Assembly (NCBI GenBank): GCA_004764695.1
Contig: SMSO01000014.1
Location: forward strand, 3,901,648 to 3,965,647
DNA length: 64,000 bases
Direction of reading: 5' to 3'
Source of the DNA: Schizochytrium sp. TIO01
Taxonomy: Eukaryota > Protista > Bigyra: Labyrinthulomycetes
Shown: piece after piece, positions 1,455 to 64,000 of the stretch
How positions within the stretch are numbered: the first letter of the stretch is position 1
How the letters are laid out: every line of letters begins with the position of its first letter
Notes under the pieces: model-generated
What the model saw: the letters and a program-made list of their open reading frames with translations, nothing else
Told to the model about the DNA's origin: nothing
Databases searched by the model: none
Program-made: the position numbers and the translations under genes

Positions 1455-2047
1455 CAGTGAACACAGCCAAATCAAACGAGAGTAGAGTCCCATATGTTCG
1501 TGTTTCCCCCCCTCCATCTGTGGTGCCTCATATGCACAGTTCCAGGCTCAACCGTGCTACAATATGAGTCATTTTAAAAGAGGGTATTCCGCCATTCAAA
1601 AGGTTGGTATCTAGGCTTCTATCGCAGTATATTGAAACAGGATGGAAGCAAAAATCAAGGCTAAGGGACATGTCGCCCTTTCCATCGTAAAAACCTCAAC
1701 TACGTAGACTGCCGAGTTCTCAAGCTAAAAGGTAAAATCCAGCGTCTCGTGCACATAACTTGGATGACTCAAGTTCTGAGTTGCAGTGAGACTCGGCAGC
1801 AACAACTGTGACAGATACACGAATGACAGCTATTTAATAGCCTAACACCTTAGTTCATGTATAATTTCTTTTGCTTCTTTAATTTATTGTGTTACAAAAC
1901 CATTCGTTCAACATTGATAGCTTTTAGGATTTAGTTTTTTAGTTTTCTAAACCTTGACAAGGAGAGCAAAGGTGGTTCTCTTTCCGGCAAGTACTTCCAA
2001 AGTAGCCAGGAAATAGCTTAATTGGGTGCTGTATTTGATCAGGATTT

Positions 2048-2656
2048 TCAACCTGAAATCTTACGTTCGAGGATGTGATCGTCTGTACTGCTCAACGTTT
2101 TCTTCGTTGATCTAGCTGTCCTTACAGACTCTTGCGAGATCTTCTTTTGCACATCATTTTCAAAGCCGATTTTGTGTGGGAAAGCGTCATCTCTGCAAGT
2201 GATGACGATTGTATCCCCACGCGTTAAGCAGTCGAGAATGCGTGCTTTCTTATTTAAAGTCTGAGTTGAATTACCTCGCTTGTGTGCTACTAATCGATAG
2301 GGCGCTGGGCTTGGTTCGCCGCGCGCCATGCTATCATGATGACGAAGTCTTCCATGAGGCTTCTGACGCTCTGCATTGCGTTGGCTTGCTACCTGGATCA
2401 ACCACCCGATAGTTTGCAAACCTTCGCCACAAGCAATTGTCATTGGTTTTGCATCGCAAAATTGCACTTTGAAATGCAGTGCTTCCTCCTTTTCTTCGCT
2501 AGCACTTTTGGCTGGCTGGGCGGCCTTTCGCTGTTTTGAAGAAGATGAATGCTCCCCAAACAAGCCAAATGATAAGCTGTTGGCTAAGTCTTCAGCTGGA
2601 TGCTCGTGAAGACCAGAAACATGCACGTTCACGCCAAGGCTTTCGTCCTCCATCAT
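2048..2656 (-). CDS. Hypothetical protein with a Par3/HAL N-terminal-like (ubiquitin-fold) domain
   Basis: FKVQF..PMTIACGEGLQTIGWLIQVASQR...LNKKARILDCLTRGDTIVI resembles the Par3/histidase N-terminal domain pattern (VPC.DG..TVGWL...A..RY). Start placed at MMEDES (2656); the ORF extends upstream to 2863. Confidence 0.55.
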   Translation of the reverse strand: MMEDESLGVNVHVSGLHEHPAEDLANSLSFGLFGEHSSSSKQRKAAQPAKSASEEKEEALHFKVQFCDAKPMTIACGEGLQTIGWLIQVASQRNAERQKPHGRLRHHDSMARGEPSPAPYRLVAHKRGNSTQTLNKKARILDCLTRGDTIVITCRDDAFPHKIGFENDVQKKISQESVRTARSTKKTLSSTDDHILERKISG

Positions 2657-3814
2657 TGAGGATTTTGGTTGGGAGGATAATCCACGAGAAAGGGGTTTGC
2701 ATGAGTGCTCATAATGCCAAGCAACATGTGTCCCTTCACTTGAGACAGCAAGTAGGGAATTAAAACTTAGAAAATTGACCAGCTTGTCACAGAAGCAGCT
2801 TTCATTCGGTAGAGAAAGTATGTGTATATTATTTAAGAAATCAAGATGGACTGCAGTGACCATCTATCCATAGCAACGCTGTGAGTGGTCCGCTCGTATT
2901 GAAGTGGTGAGAGTTTACCGGATCTCTTCACCTTTTCAACTTTCTTATTGGATTCTGTAAATACTTGGCCATCACTGTTCCTATTGATTGACAACACATG
3001 CATGGACTACCAAGGACGCGGTAGCTGTGGTCTGCGACCAAGCAAGCTGCTGAGTCCACTACCGGGGGACAAACATTCCAATCAGCTTTAATTTTTGTTA
3101 ACTTAAAATGGACCTGCGATTGTTGGACTCCAACAACTCAGGTGCGGTCCCTTTCAAAAGTTATACATAGTTTTTTGATTTTATTTAATTAAAAAAAAAA
3201 GTAAGAGTGAGAGAATGAAGAAAAAGGGTGAAAGACAAAAGAAGGGAAAAGAGACCATAGAATAGTAGAACGGGAACTCTTAGAGTTTCCTTTATCAAAA
3301 GGAAACAGGATTTTGCCGCGCGGGAGAGAACTATTAATGCCAAGTAGAGGCATGGGTGTCAAATTAACCTATCGATCAATCCGATCAATGAACATTTCGC
3401 TTTTTGTTTGAACTCACAACAAAGGATTTGTTTAGTTCGTAGAGCTGAGGAAGGAAGGAGGTGGCGCGTTGCGAAGGCTGGAATGACTAGCAAAGAAACT
3501 GTGTCAACACAGTTCTCGGTTGTATCCCCTTTTAAGCACGCTCTATTTTTATGTGTTGGCGATGACAACATATATTATGCCGACAGTAAAACATCGCAAA
3601 ACAAACATATACCCACTGTTTTTCTATTTTTTCTATTCTATAATTATCTGAACTAGAGAATCGAGGAGAGGAGCGTAACAACGCGAAAAATTCTATTGAT
3701 AATATTAATAATTACAATAGCAACAATAGTACCTACTACAAATCATGTTTTCCATCACCACTATTTGATGTTGAGATATAGCATGAAAACAGTCCAATTC
3801 CGGTCTTCTCATGA

Positions 3815-60382: not shown

Positions 60383-60811
60383 AGTCAAGACCGTCCAGCT
60401 CCCTTCTCACCCTTTCTGTCTAGAGGTGATAAAGCTTCACCGCTTCCTTACTTCTGAAAACCTGGTCGCATAATTCCAAGACCCTTTACCTTATTGCCTC
60501 GTTCGCCCTGTTCGCTTGAGACCTCTGTTCTCAAGATGCACATGTTTTACATATTTTGTAAACATCATCTTAGCCGTTGGTACTTCTATGGTCTTTCAAG
60601 ACTTACATTATTATTTATTGTTATTTTTAAATTAAAAAAGTTTTCTTAATTTATATATATTTATTTATTTAATCAAAATAACACCGTGTCTACTTCGAAG
60701 TTCTCTTTGGTGACTAATAAAATATGAAGTACAAGAATAAATACATGTGAAATTCAAACACTAGGCAGTAGCTACAGTTATCTATGCCATTAATGCCCAG
60801 AATTTCTCTCT

Positions 60812-60939
60812 ACCCCTTTCAGAATCTTCAAAACTTGCATTTCCTGTATAAGGCCCAATCGCGGGTTGAAACCTAACACGCGACCCAAAGACAATCTCTT
60901 AATCATGTCCTTGGATAGGTAGCGCAAAAGGATGCCTCT
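60812..60939 (-). ncRNA. Putative omegaRNA scaffold of the non-autonomous copy
   Basis: 38/39-nt and 15/15-nt blocks identical to the intact element's 3' end; hairpin TCGCGTGTT/AACCCGCGA (60859-60883) retained. Confidence 0.5.
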
Positions 60940-61432
60940 GGCGGTGTGGATATCGCAATCGTCTTCATGTTCGATTTTTTGGGGGATAGTTGGAAACCTT
61001 GGATGTTCCGAACTTGTTATGGATGGTACGACATTCATTGCATGGTTTTGAAGCTCAGTCCTCTTGGGAAATAACCAGTTTACACCACTGCCGGGGGAAC
61101 GCTCGGTCCTGCGAATGAACGAGCTAGAGGTCACCAATCTGGCATTTGGCATTCTCGTTTTGCTCGGCGAAGGACACTCTGGCGTAGATAATGACACGGT
61201 CAGTGCTGCGTTGCTCGCCGGAGCAAACCGCAGCCACAGATGTGCCCCAGCATCGTCACCTGCGTATGTGCGATTGTCTATGGGGAGCCCCAAAGGGTAC
61301 TTGCTGAGACGCCAAACTTCTGGTTGAAGTAGTACCTCGCTGGCTTAAGTATTGCAGGTTTGCTTCACTTGAGGTCTTTGGAGTTTGGTGGTTCCTTGGC
61401 CATTCCATTTTCTTACCTAACCTCCACTTCTT
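60812..61432 (-). mobile_element. Non-autonomous, internally deleted and diverged copy of the adjacent IS607/Fanzor2 element, in inverted orientation
   Basis: The reverse complement aligns to about 61644-62036 (tnpA 5' part: MEWPRNHQTPKTSSEANLQY and IYARVS, then frameshift and stop) and jumps near 61077 to about 63463-63730 (Zn finger, DIHTARGILLRYLSKDMI, 3' non-coding end). About 1.4 kb is deleted. Ends are approximate. Confidence 0.88.
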
Positions 61433-61667
61433 GACAAAGACCTGAACAATGAATTATAAGATATCATCATTTGTATGTTGTACTGTTTCATAGGGACAGT
61501 GCTACTAGCTACGAGTCAAGCAGTCGAAACTTGCAGCAGTATATTTTTAGAGCTATAACAAAAAACGTTAAAAGTTCGATAACTTATATTTCGATGTGAT
61601 TGTTTCATATTAACCATATATTATGTTTAGTTAGATTATTAATAAGAAGTAGAGGTTAGATAAGAAA

Positions 61668-62366
61668 ATGGGGAGGCCGAGGAACCGACAAGCTCCAAAC
61701 ACTGCAAGTGGAGCAAACCTCGAATACAAACCAGCAAAGTTCTTTCACCGGAAGTTTGGGGTCTCAGCAAGCGCCCTTCGGGGCTGGGCCGACGGCGGAC
61801 GCGTGCGCTTCGCGCGCTTCCCCGGAGGCAAGCGCATCTATGCCAGCGACGATGTTGAGCGCATCTTTGATTGCGGTTCCACCGGCCGCGAGCAACGCAG
61901 CTCTGGATGTACCGTTATCTACGCCAGAGTGTCCTCGGTCAAGCAAAAGGAGGACCTCGAACGCCAGGTTGGCGATCTCCAGCGCGTCTACCCAGATGCT
62001 TCCGCCGTCTACAAAGACATCGGTAGCGGGGTCAATTTCAAACGCCAAGGTCTGTGCTCCCTACTGGACGCCTGTGACCGCGGCGGAATCGGCCAAGTTG
62101 TGGTCATGCACCGCGACCGACTTGCGCGAATCGCAGTCGACCTCTTGGAACACCTTTTCGAAAGAAAAAATGTCAAACTCGTGGTACACGGCCAAGATGC
62201 ACATGCCGGAGACTCAGACACCTTCACCAAAGACCTCCTCGGAATCATCACCGTCTTTGTGGCATCGCATCACGGAAAACGAGCAGCGCAAAATAGACGG
62301 CGACGACGCAGCGAGGAAGAAGCGAGCTCGCACGAAGGCGCGCAAGACCATCAAGAAAGAATATAA
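61668..62366 (+). CDS. tnpA: IS607-family serine recombinase/transposase TnpA (N-terminal MerR-like HTH + resolvase catalytic domain)
   Basis: FGVSASALRGWADGG......PGGKRIY HTH; IYARVSSVKQKEDLERQ (catalytic Ser codon 61932-61934); DIGSGVNFKRQGL; HRDRLAR; DLLGIITVF.....GKR. Confidence 0.95.
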   Translation: MGRPRNRQAPNTASGANLEYKPAKFFHRKFGVSASALRGWADGGRVRFARFPGGKRIYASDDVERIFDCGSTGREQRSSGCTVIYARVSSVKQKEDLERQVGDLQRVYPDASAVYKDIGSGVNFKRQGLCSLLDACDRGGIGQVVVMHRDRLARIAVDLLEHLFERKNVKLVVHGQDAHAGDSDTFTKDLLGIITVFVASHHGKRAAQNRRRRRSEEEASSHEGAQDHQERI

Positions 62367-63645
62367 CCTTGTCCGTGCCAGAAAGGTTAGGGTATATCCT
62401 ACTAAAGATCAACGTACACAGTTGCTTAAATGGTTTGGTGTCACTAGAAGAGCCTACAATATTGGCGTTGCGTTTCACCGAGACATGGCGAAGGGCGAGG
62501 AAGAAGCCATCAAATTGCATCAAGAAGCGTGCATCAAAAAGGATCCCAAGACGAAGCAGGATTTAGTAGATGAAGATGGGAATCCCCAAACGTATGGTGC
62601 CCTCTATGGAGAAAAGAAAGCCGTTCGATCTAAAGAAAGGAATGGTGCTCCTGAATGGGTTCTCGAGGTCCCACAGGCTATCCGTGATTCCGGGATTCTG
62701 GATTTCTTCAAGGCTATTAACTCGGGACGAGCCAAAAACGAAGAACTCGCTGTACAAAAGAAAGTCCATGAGCGATCTTTCTATAAGTTTCGGAGCAAGC
62801 GTGATGAATCACAGATTTTCGAAGTGAATGCACGTACCTGGAATGCGAAGAAATCAAAGACCTCCGACTTTCTTAAAAAATTCCGAACACGTAAAGAAAA
62901 GTTCCCCGACCAGATTTCGAACGCCATGCGTGTGCAAATGAATCGCCTTGGGCATGTCTACTTCTGCTTCTTACGAGAAGAAAAAAAGCGTCCAATGGAC
63001 CAGGCACCCAAGGCGCACCATGGTGTCATTGCTCTAGACCCGGGTGTTCGCTCGTTTCAGACGATGTATGACGCCGATGGCCGCGCCATTGAATGGGGCA
63101 CAGGGAAAGATTTTAGAACCATATTCTATCTCTGTCGCCGCGTTGATAAGATCCAAAGCAGCATTGATAAAAAGAAAACTGCATCCAGTGATAAAGACAA
63201 TTTCAACACCCCCTTGAAGCGCGCCTTCTATCGCGCCCAACTCAAGATCAAGAACAAGATCACTGAGATTCACCGCAAGCTCGCGCTTTGGCTTTGTGAA
63301 AACTATCGTGTTATTCTCTTGCCCAAATTCGAAACCTCTAAGATGAGCAGGAGGATGGAGCGACGGATATCCAAGAAGTCTGTTCGAATGATGTGTCGTT
63401 GGTCCCATTTTGGGTTTCGCCAGGCTCTCATTCATAAGGCTGAGATGTTCCCGTGGTGCAAGCTTGTTCTTTGCCAAGAAAGTTACACTTCCAAAACATG
63501 CAATGAGTGTGGTACCCTCCACCATAACCTCGGGGCATCCAAGATTTTCCAATGCCCTAATCCCAAGTGCAACCATGTAGCAGACCGTGATGTCCATGCC
63601 GCAAGAGGCATCCTTTTACGCTACCTATCCAAGGACATGATTTAA
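61840..63645 (+). CDS. tnpB: Fanzor2 / IS607 TnpB-type RNA-guided endonuclease
   Basis: KVRVYPTKDQ...LKWFGVTRRAYN; RuvC-I ALDPGVRSF (Asp 63037); RuvC-II ILLPKF with Pro at the canonical Glu position and an alternative Glu in QESYTSKTC (63478); Zn finger CNEC...CPNPKC; RuvC-III DRDVHAARGI (Asp 63589). The frame is open from 61708; candidate ATGs are 61840, 61852, 61996, 62170, 62197 and 62203. Confidence 0.93.
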   Translation: MPATMLSASLIAVPPAASNAALDVPLSTPECPRSSKRRTSNARLAISSASTQMLPPSTKTSVAGSISNAKVCAPYWTPVTAAESAKLWSCTATDLRESQSTSWNTFSKEKMSNSWYTAKMHMPETQTPSPKTSSESSPSLWHRITENEQRKIDGDDAARKKRARTKARKTIKKEYNLVRARKVRVYPTKDQRTQLLKWFGVTRRAYNIGVAFHRDMAKGEEEAIKLHQEACIKKDPKTKQDLVDEDGNPQTYGALYGEKKAVRSKERNGAPEWVLEVPQAIRDSGILDFFKAINSGRAKNEELAVQKKVHERSFYKFRSKRDESQIFEVNARTWNAKKSKTSDFLKKFRTRKEKFPDQISNAMRVQMNRLGHVYFCFLREEKKRPMDQAPKAHHGVIALDPGVRSFQTMYDADGRAIEWGTGKDFRTIFYLCRRVDKIQSSIDKKKTASSDKDNFNTPLKRAFYRAQLKIKNKITEIHRKLALWLCENYRVILLPKFETSKMSRRMERRISKKSVRMMCRWSHFGFRQALIHKAEMFPWCKLVLCQESYTSKTCNECGTLHHNLGASKIFQCPNPKCNHVADRDVHAARGILLRYLSKDMI

Positions 63646-63755
63646 AAAAATCATTTCATTGAGTCGCGGGTTAGTCTAACTAGCTCGTGATGAAGTCTTA
63701 GCTCTATGAAATGCAAGTTTTGCAAATTTTATAGTTTAAAATCTAAGAGAGACGC
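63604..63755 (+). ncRNA. Putative Fanzor omegaRNA (scaffold to about 63734 plus flanking guide)
   Basis: Nested stems: 63652-63663 pairs with 63702-63713 (11/12 bp) and encloses 63664-63674/63680-63690 (11 bp including three G-U pairs). Sequence blocks are conserved with the remnant, and the position at the element's right end is typical of TnpB/Fanzor guide RNAs. Confidence 0.65.
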
Positions 63756-64000
63756 TGTTCCACAGGTTTTACACTCGTGGCTATTCCCACAGGCATATAT
63801 ACTTAGGTTAAACACTCCAGTAAAGGTGTTCCTCCTGGCGCCACTGATAGTCTATCAACTGAACGAGATCGATCACTTAGGCTAGCTAGATGCCTACGCG
63901 CCTACTTAGCCGATCGCTAACTAACTACTTACCATACTGTTAATGGTTATGTAGATTTTACAATAATAATAATAAATGATGATGGTAGTGATAAATCACT

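Follow-up and report, generated by a model that had tools for sequence, protein, structure and literature searches.

Does the bacterial pairing of a serine recombinase gene with a gene for an RNA-guided nuclease persist as a complete, recently mobile unit in the nuclear genome of a free-living protist? The question is raised by a 64,000-nucleotide stretch of Schizochytrium sp. TIO01 (contig SMSO01000014.1; hereafter the window, whose coordinates are used throughout), near the end of which a first-pass annotation had seen an apparently intact IS607-Fanzor2 system. In our reading, which we consider probable, window 61555-63749 is an autonomous copy of the eukaryotic branch of IS607 (IS607EU), recently mobile in a stramenopile nuclear genome. 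The reading rests on sharp shared ends at unique sites, intact genes, purifying selection, poly(A) transcripts and a structured 3' end.

The element, its two genes and its copies

Alignment of 18 genomic copies with their flanks delimited one IS607-type element copy of 2.2 kb with abrupt ends: similarity between copies begins abruptly at about 61555 and ends just as abruptly after CTAAGAG at 63749, the flanks of different copies are mutually unrelated, and both flanks of this copy are single-copy in the genome. The interval first proposed, 61644-63755, was close to these ends, and its bounds shift to about 61555 and 63749. No empty site for this copy was found in the genome, both flanks being unique. 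BLASTN of the locus against itself gave no inverted match between left and right ends, and therefore no terminal inverted repeats (TIRs), and no direct repeat indicative of a target-site duplication (TSD) was present in the flanks of 17 copies.

The left end and 5' leader (61555..61667, + strand) begin where the similarity among the 18 copies starts, and a contig of sequencing run X15 begins at 61556. Just 5' of this conserved end lies CAGTA (61537..61541, +), a candidate target motif or target-adjacent motif (TAM), or else the extreme tip of the left end; CAG, mostly as CAGTA, precedes the conserved left-end core by 0-8 nt, rarely by up to 35 nt, in 16 of 17 copies, and sequence 5' of it is unrelated between copies. 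The right end closes in GAG and the next base is A or T. With the left flank ending in CAG and the element in GAG, the junctions are compatible with an AG core. Bacterial IS607 elements are inserted after GG and, in most members, end in GG, and the analogy suggests an AG core with a CAG-type TAM. Accepting that analogy, the family may use a non-G-rich candidate TAM (CAG or CAGTA), unlike the G-rich TAMs reported for Fanzor2. At the left junctions (L001-L018, window 61542-61559), CAGTA is separated from the conserved ACAAAAA by 2-5 nt that vary even among copies 97-99% identical, and there are 12 extra nt in this copy (ATTTTTAGAGCT) and about 30 in L008.

The upstream gene, tnpA (61668..62366, +), encodes an IS607-type serine recombinase of 232 aa with an N-terminal MerR-like helix-turn-helix (HTH) and a C-terminal catalytic domain. 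Pfam Resolvase matched residues 83-216 (E 2e-19), a weak MerR-type HTH match covered residues 28-66, and the best solved relatives in the PDB were the catalytic domains of the IS607-family TnpAs ISC1904, ISC1926 and IS1535. Both YARVSS, with its serine, and HRDRLAR were found, and the intact recombinase gene that had been recognized by the YARVSS serine and DRLAR is supported by the list of open reading frames (ORFs) and by the Resolvase match. The frame is stop-free in 9 of the 18 copies examined. The tnpB-type gene lies downstream of tnpA on the same strand, and in 16 copies the common 2.2-kb unit contains both genes; judged by its sequence, the unit is an IS607-type transposon of the eukaryotic branch.

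Some copies differ within this gene. L005 (604-897; likewise L003, L007 and L017) carries a 294-bp insertion in tnpA, at a point corresponding to window 61749/61750, which contains (CCTAA)5 and in-frame stops and leaves tnpA broken and the downstream Fanzor ORF intact. Contigs of runs X15 and X16 enter 61750 from this insertion, with a summed depth about 10-fold higher there, and the insertion might drive nuclease-only transcripts; a spliceosomal intron was ruled out, since the insertion has no GT-AG ends and puts stops in the tnpA frame. In L006 (G000:C35:87348-89322) TnpA is 100% identical to that of the window copy, whereas the nuclease core is only 95% identical, a sequence contrast that suggests recombination or gene conversion between copies.

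The second gene is an intact Fanzor2-type nuclease gene. Its canonical TnpB-like core (62353-63645, +) matches the Pfam families HTH_OrfB_IS605 (3e-9) and Cas12f1-like_TNB (1e-13), and the RuvC triad and zinc finger lie within 63037..63591 (+): D460 in LDPGVRSF, the LDPG motif (codon 63037-63039), E607 in QESYTSKTC, the alternative RuvC-II Glu (codon 63478-63480), the zinc finger CxxC...CxxxxC, here CNEC...CPNPKC, formed by C614, C617, C632 and C637 (63499-63570), and D644 in ADRD, the RD motif of RuvC-III (codon 63589-63591). The three acidic residues are invariant in two alignments, A1 and A3, and the zinc-finger cysteines are invariant in the first and at least 90% conserved in the second; within DPG, D460 and G462 do not vary among 69 relatives, and P461 is conserved in at least 90% of them. 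Thus, a TnpB-like ORF with three RuvC acidic residues and a zinc finger, as first described, is what the locus holds. Its rearranged RuvC-II also proved to be as proposed: ILLPKF, with no acidic residue, occupies the canonical Glu position, and the nuclease Asp and Glu align in HMMER with D324 and E467 of mimivirus Fanzor2 (9b0l), E607 with E467, these being the residues mutated in the catalytically dead ApmFNuc. The combination of DPG and the alternative Glu defines the Fanzor/pro-Fanzor lineage (Yoon, 2023).

In HMMER, the best solved relative was the mimivirus TnpB-like protein L79 (ApmFanzor2), with E 1e-19 from the single sequence and 5e-78 from the profile. An AlphaFold (AF2) model built from the 69 relatives had a predicted template modelling score (pTM) of 0.73 and a core predicted local distance difference test (pLDDT) above 90. 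Its residues 132-661 matched 9b0l with Z 23.7 and a root mean square deviation of 3.9 over 422 aligned residues; Foldseek gave E 3e-21 against ApmFanzor2, Z against ISDra2 TnpB was 20.5, and the Fanzor1 structures SpuFz and GtFz ranked only 39-45 in Foldseek. The modelled fold is of TnpB/Cas12 type, with predicted WED, REC, split RuvC and zinc finger. On this basis RNA-guided, TAM-dependent cleavage is predicted for the protein, and the earlier words "active" and "programmable" are best taken in that predictive sense.

The family is large. In the 64-Mb, 37-contig assembly that was searched, the nuclease query gave 112 matches, 16 of them full-length at 91-100% identity and on many contigs, and the recombinase query gave 153, numbers far beyond chance; other copies, which the first-pass annotation had proposed to seek by BLAST, thus form a multi-copy family. 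Both ORFs are intact in nine copies including this one, and the Fanzor ORF in at least 15, alongside many relics and internally deleted derivatives. An older non-autonomous derivative of the deleted kind stands head to head with the element (60790..61432, - strand; inverted BLASTN matches of 69-73% identity to 61644-61987 and 63453-63674) and retains the left end, 5' tnpA, 3' Fanzor and the right end. Short deleted derivatives elsewhere in the genome (e.g., L018:275-871 and L253-L259) share about 70-77% identity with the full element, retain the helices of the predicted guide RNA discussed below, and end in CTAAGTG, not CTAAGAG.

The surroundings are eukaryotic, as had been claimed, with neighbouring ORFs for a DDX21-like DEAD/GUCT helicase, a Ddi1-type protease, a CRAL-TRIO/GOLD protein and a WD40 protein. 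The nearest named relatives of the helicase are in oomycetes and brown algae at only 45-49% identity, which places the host among stramenopiles outside both groups. In a quick tree, the window protein grouped with eukaryote-like sequences and a protein of the dinoflagellate Durusdinium (100% support), and cyanobacterial proteins formed a clade of their own, also with 100% support; the phylogenetic check suggested with the first annotation accordingly gave a eukaryote-like placement, not one among bacterial TnpBs. The eukaryote-like clade also took in L150 (PIVJ01000273.1; 1994 bp, element-sized), which shares 40% identity with the window nuclease core and comes from a metagenome-assembled genome binned as Bacteroidetes, probably wrongly.

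A nuclease frame laid over the recombinase gene

From stop to stop, the Fanzor2 frame extends over 661 codons (61660..63645, +), in the +1 frame relative to tnpA, and spans all of that gene. The first-pass annotation had the nuclease ORF begin after tnpA, and this must be revised, as the frame is open from 61660. The first ATG of the frame, at 61840, gives a protein of 601 aa and is also the first ATG on this strand after that of tnpA; in another subfamily, the nuclease ATG lies 16 codons further upstream. The predicted ordered part of the Fanzor N-terminal extension, residues 132-235 (62055..62364, +; AF2 pLDDT 58-88), is inside tnpA. It superposes on resolved residues 53-131 of ApmFanzor2, and ISDra2 TnpB aligns from model residue 235 onward only. 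Within the extension, W136, S144, L147, S174 and W175 are at least 90% conserved in the 69 sequences, and relatives at 45-49% identity carry N-terminal extensions of about 200 aa alignable with that of the window protein. A PDB search with the extension alone returned no match, and its homology to ApmFanzor2 53-131 was seen only by profile and structure. The basic run RKKRARTKARKTIKK, at about 62314-62358 in the extension, resembles a nuclear localization signal and may act as one.

Frames nested in this way are widespread. Of 41 non-redundant metagenome elements, 35 have a +1 nuclease frame that stays open over most or all of tnpA. The same nesting was found in 17 of the 27 giant-virus contigs with a same-strand tnpA and, counting overlaps of at least 450 nt, in 48 of the 69 cyanobacterial loci for which tnpA was matched upstream. 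Stops over tnpA in the metagenome set total 60 in the +1 frame versus 485 in the +2 frame. When 24 diverse tnpA genes were compared with synonymous-codon shuffles, 0.5-8.7 stops in +1 were expected for each and none was observed in any of the 24; moreover, the +1 translations of distant tnpA genes were more alike than synonymous-shuffled controls (z 2.1-9.5, 12 pairs). In the elements of relatives, 4-120 nt without a further ATG usually separate the start codons of the two genes. Comparisons of this kind indicate that the nesting is neither chance nor special to this genome.

Two further sets of loci illustrate the layout. On plasmid pCC7120alpha of Nostoc sp. PCC 7120, the TnpB frame can be read for 553 aa, beginning with an ATG at 1360 (L262:1245-3021), although RefSeq annotates only 391 aa (1846-3021); the longer frame has the conserved YW/LW/SWF motifs, and the tnpA that it overlaps has a stop just before the catalytic serine. 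Giant-virus contigs L111-L149, including the 344,691-bp IMG/VR contig L124 and GVMAG contigs, show the same nested tnpA and nuclease, and the nuclease ATG of L124 precedes the tnpA ATG by 5 nt.

Because cyanobacterial elements share the nesting, it would be ancestral and not a eukaryotic invention; an origin as a eukaryotic leaky-scanning adaptation was rejected, since cyanobacterial elements are nested alike. We propose, giving the whole of this reading somewhat less than even weight, that the extension is truly translated in +1 over the whole of tnpA and that the ancestral nesting has been selected across the IS607 clade with DPG and alternative Glu, from cyanobacteria through giant viruses to protists, with two proteins made per RNA by choice of start. 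The same tentative reading implies that bacterial nucleases are annotated about 170-200 residues too short in databases. In a eukaryote, the nesting would let one capped RNA yield both proteins.

We did not find the nesting mentioned in the Fanzor and IS607 literature searched. The word "overlap" does not occur in Bao and Jurka (2013), Yoon (2023) or a 2026 OMEGA review; in Jiang (2023) and in a 2023 classification paper on TnpB and Cas12, it refers only to the guide RNA over the coding region or transposon end; and Gilbert and Cordaux (2013) describe IS607 simply as "two overlapping ORFs". The dual-coding architecture appears to be under-described.

The right end, the life of the family and rival explanations

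The final 170 nt or so of the element (63577..63749, +) form the right end and a predicted omegaRNA scaffold with conserved helices, and have a folding z of -2.9. The predicted scaffold comprises helices at 63577-63624 and 63663-63691, a hairpin at 63692-63702, damaged in this copy, and another at 63712-63724 (all +). Across 24 copies of 71-100% identity, five helices were 92-93% paired versus 28-49% with the partners slid, and changes within the helices comprised many one-sided G-U/G-C switches and few compensatory ones. Those G-U pairs that are invariant indicate a scaffold RNA of this strand. A candidate pseudoknot (+) joins CUUAG in a loop (63697-63701) to a terminal CUAAG (63743-63747); pairing holds for 89% of cells, 2 of the pairs having changed on both sides, and the pseudoknot resembles the pseudoknot of TnpB and Fanzor2 guide RNAs, reported to be required in TnpB and predicted in Fanzor2. 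A search of Rfam gave no family at or near its gathering score. The flank that would be read as guide is 63750..63766 (+), where copies diverge right after CTAAGAG. In run X16, a loose end at window 63750 reads through into about 16 nt of the flank of another copy, L014, and then poly(A); the guide may thus end where the host adds its poly(A), shortly beyond the right end.

In the mechanism that we envisage, one sense transcript would hold both frames, tnpA from 61668 and Fanzor2 from the next ATG at 61840, and TnpA and Fanzor2 would probably be made by alternative initiation. TnpA would excise and integrate the double-stranded element without duplications, beside a short motif, and the 3' untranslated end (about 63577-63749) would fold as guide-RNA scaffold and continue into the flank for about 15 nt. 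Guided by this RNA, Fanzor2 would then cut the emptied site beside the left-flank motif, and repair would restore the element.

Evidence that the family has lived recently comes from substitutions and from RNA. Substitutions shared by at least two copies are 3.5-fold rarer in the overlap (0.021 per site) than in the Fanzor-only part (0.074 per site), and in the Fanzor-only part 44% of them are synonymous versus 21% expected; singletons occur at 0.042 per site in both parts alike. Such is the pattern expected if active lineages are under selection and copies decay neutrally after insertion. Furthermore, transcript ORFs of 601 and 617 aa in the poly(A)-selected MMETSP data are 96% identical to this copy, and oligo-dT RNA-seq runs of another organism gave contigs on the element.

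Five points weigh against this interpretation. This copy is without the TCCT that follows 63702 (a 4-nt deletion), so that the 3' arm of a conserved hairpin is gone; its proteins are intact and one scaffold hairpin is damaged, and its own predicted guide RNA may be impaired. Initiation context is strong at the tnpA ATG (A at -3, G at +4) and weak at the Fanzor ATG, which does not favour simple leaky scanning. An older subfamily terminates in TG, not AG, which bears on the crossover dinucleotide. The RNA runs were assessed as assembled contigs, in which depths, RNA ends and strands are unreliable and small RNAs are not visible. Finally, excision, circles, the ribonucleoprotein and cleavage are steps that we infer.

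It is in this light that an intact-looking but extinct family, with transposition ceased, the nuclease inactive and the transcripts mere noise, must be judged. We regard it as unlikely: several copies do have stops, the 294-bp tnpA insertion or truncations, relics are many in the genome and the scaffold of this copy bears its lesion, but nine copies keep both ORFs, the shared substitutions show purifying selection while the singletons look neutral, poly(A) RNA occurs in several data sets, and the same TCCT deletion is found in one other copy at a different site, from which it follows that the lineage moved after the deletion arose. Far less probable is a Fanzor gene domesticated by the host, for instance as an RNA-guided regulator that no longer serves the transposon; Gilbert and Cordaux (2013) proposed such a fate for some eukaryotic IS607 fragments, and copies with a broken tnpA and an intact Fanzor ORF exist here, yet the catalytic triad is intact and the gene is multi-copy, in mobile units with conserved ends, and has no one host locus at which it is conserved. 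Least credible is that the sequence stems from bacterial or giant-virus contamination or from a faulty assembly junction: giant-virus contigs and cyanobacteria are among the closest relatives, but copies sit on at least 10 large contigs of the 37, this one has unique flanks and eukaryotic genes around it, the element was found in sequencing runs from 11 studies, and the tree groups the protein with eukaryotic sequences. We therefore retain the recently mobile, autonomous IS607EU copy as our reading of the locus.

Significance and known systems

The class itself, as the first-pass annotation had recognized, is already described: knowledge of eukaryotic IS607 elements that combine a serine recombinase with Fanzor2 goes back to 2013 (Acanthamoeba, giant viruses), and that of Fanzor2 activity to 2023. 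In the literature searched, no paper connected labyrinthulomycetes with Fanzor or IS607. IS607 transposition was not demonstrable in any eukaryote in a 2013 survey, and most Fanzor2 experiments use viral or mollusc proteins outside their own hosts. In this context, the present family is of value for the number of its copies, their intactness, its expression and its defined ends in a free-living protist, together with the conserved dual-coding layout, which shifts where the start of the nuclease gene should be annotated. It would offer a natural system for studying serine-recombinase transposition, RNA-guided homing and the expression of a two-gene bacterial unit in a native eukaryote, as well as a compact nuclease (601 aa), possibly with a new non-G-rich TAM.

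Among known systems, ApmFNuc (the Fanzor2 of Acanthamoeba polyphaga mimivirus, L79, PDB 9b0l) is the best match in both sequence and structure. The two nucleases share DPG, the alternative Glu, the zinc finger and the RD motif, both have an N-terminal segment before the TnpB core (residues 132-235 here, 53-131 in the viral protein), and both are tied to an IS607 TnpA and a structured 3' RNA, which for the window element is predicted. They are, however, only 19-21% identical in structural alignments, and the host of one is a virus, whereas the other resides in a cellular nuclear genome; the viral TAM is G-rich (TGGG), in contrast with the candidate flank motif CAG(TA), and the window frame has about 130 further residues, predicted to be disordered.

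The IS607-like elements of Acanthamoeba castellanii, ACa-1/-2 (Bao and Jurka, 2013) and Ac3/Ac4 (Gilbert and Cordaux, 2013), resemble the window element in being nuclear, in combining a serine recombinase with Fanzor2 and in having no TIRs or TSDs, and their intact copies are thought potentially active; their host, however, belongs to Amoebozoa and ours to the stramenopiles. The stramenopile IS607 sequences reported in 2013 from oomycetes and Ectocarpus were mostly fragments (Gilbert and Cordaux, 2013), whereas the present family has at least nine fully intact copies, defined ends, unique sites and non-autonomous derivatives.

Cyanobacterial "pro-Fanzor" IS607 elements (ISArma1; Yoon, 2023) share with the window element DPG, the alternative Glu and an IS607 TnpA, and in them, too, a long +1 TnpB frame encloses tnpA, although their TnpB is annotated in databases as just 356-391 aa. 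They differ in their prokaryotic hosts, in an identity of 27-33%, in forming a separate clade and in having no poly(A) RNA. TnpB of ISDra2 and ISXfa1, for which a homing role has been shown, has the same core fold (Z 19-20 over model residues 235-661) and a guide RNA from the right end with a pseudoknot. Unlike the window nuclease, ISDra2 TnpB keeps the canonical RuvC-II Glu and is without the N-terminal extension, and ISDra2 moves by a Y1 transposase and single-stranded DNA, where the element described here has a serine recombinase.

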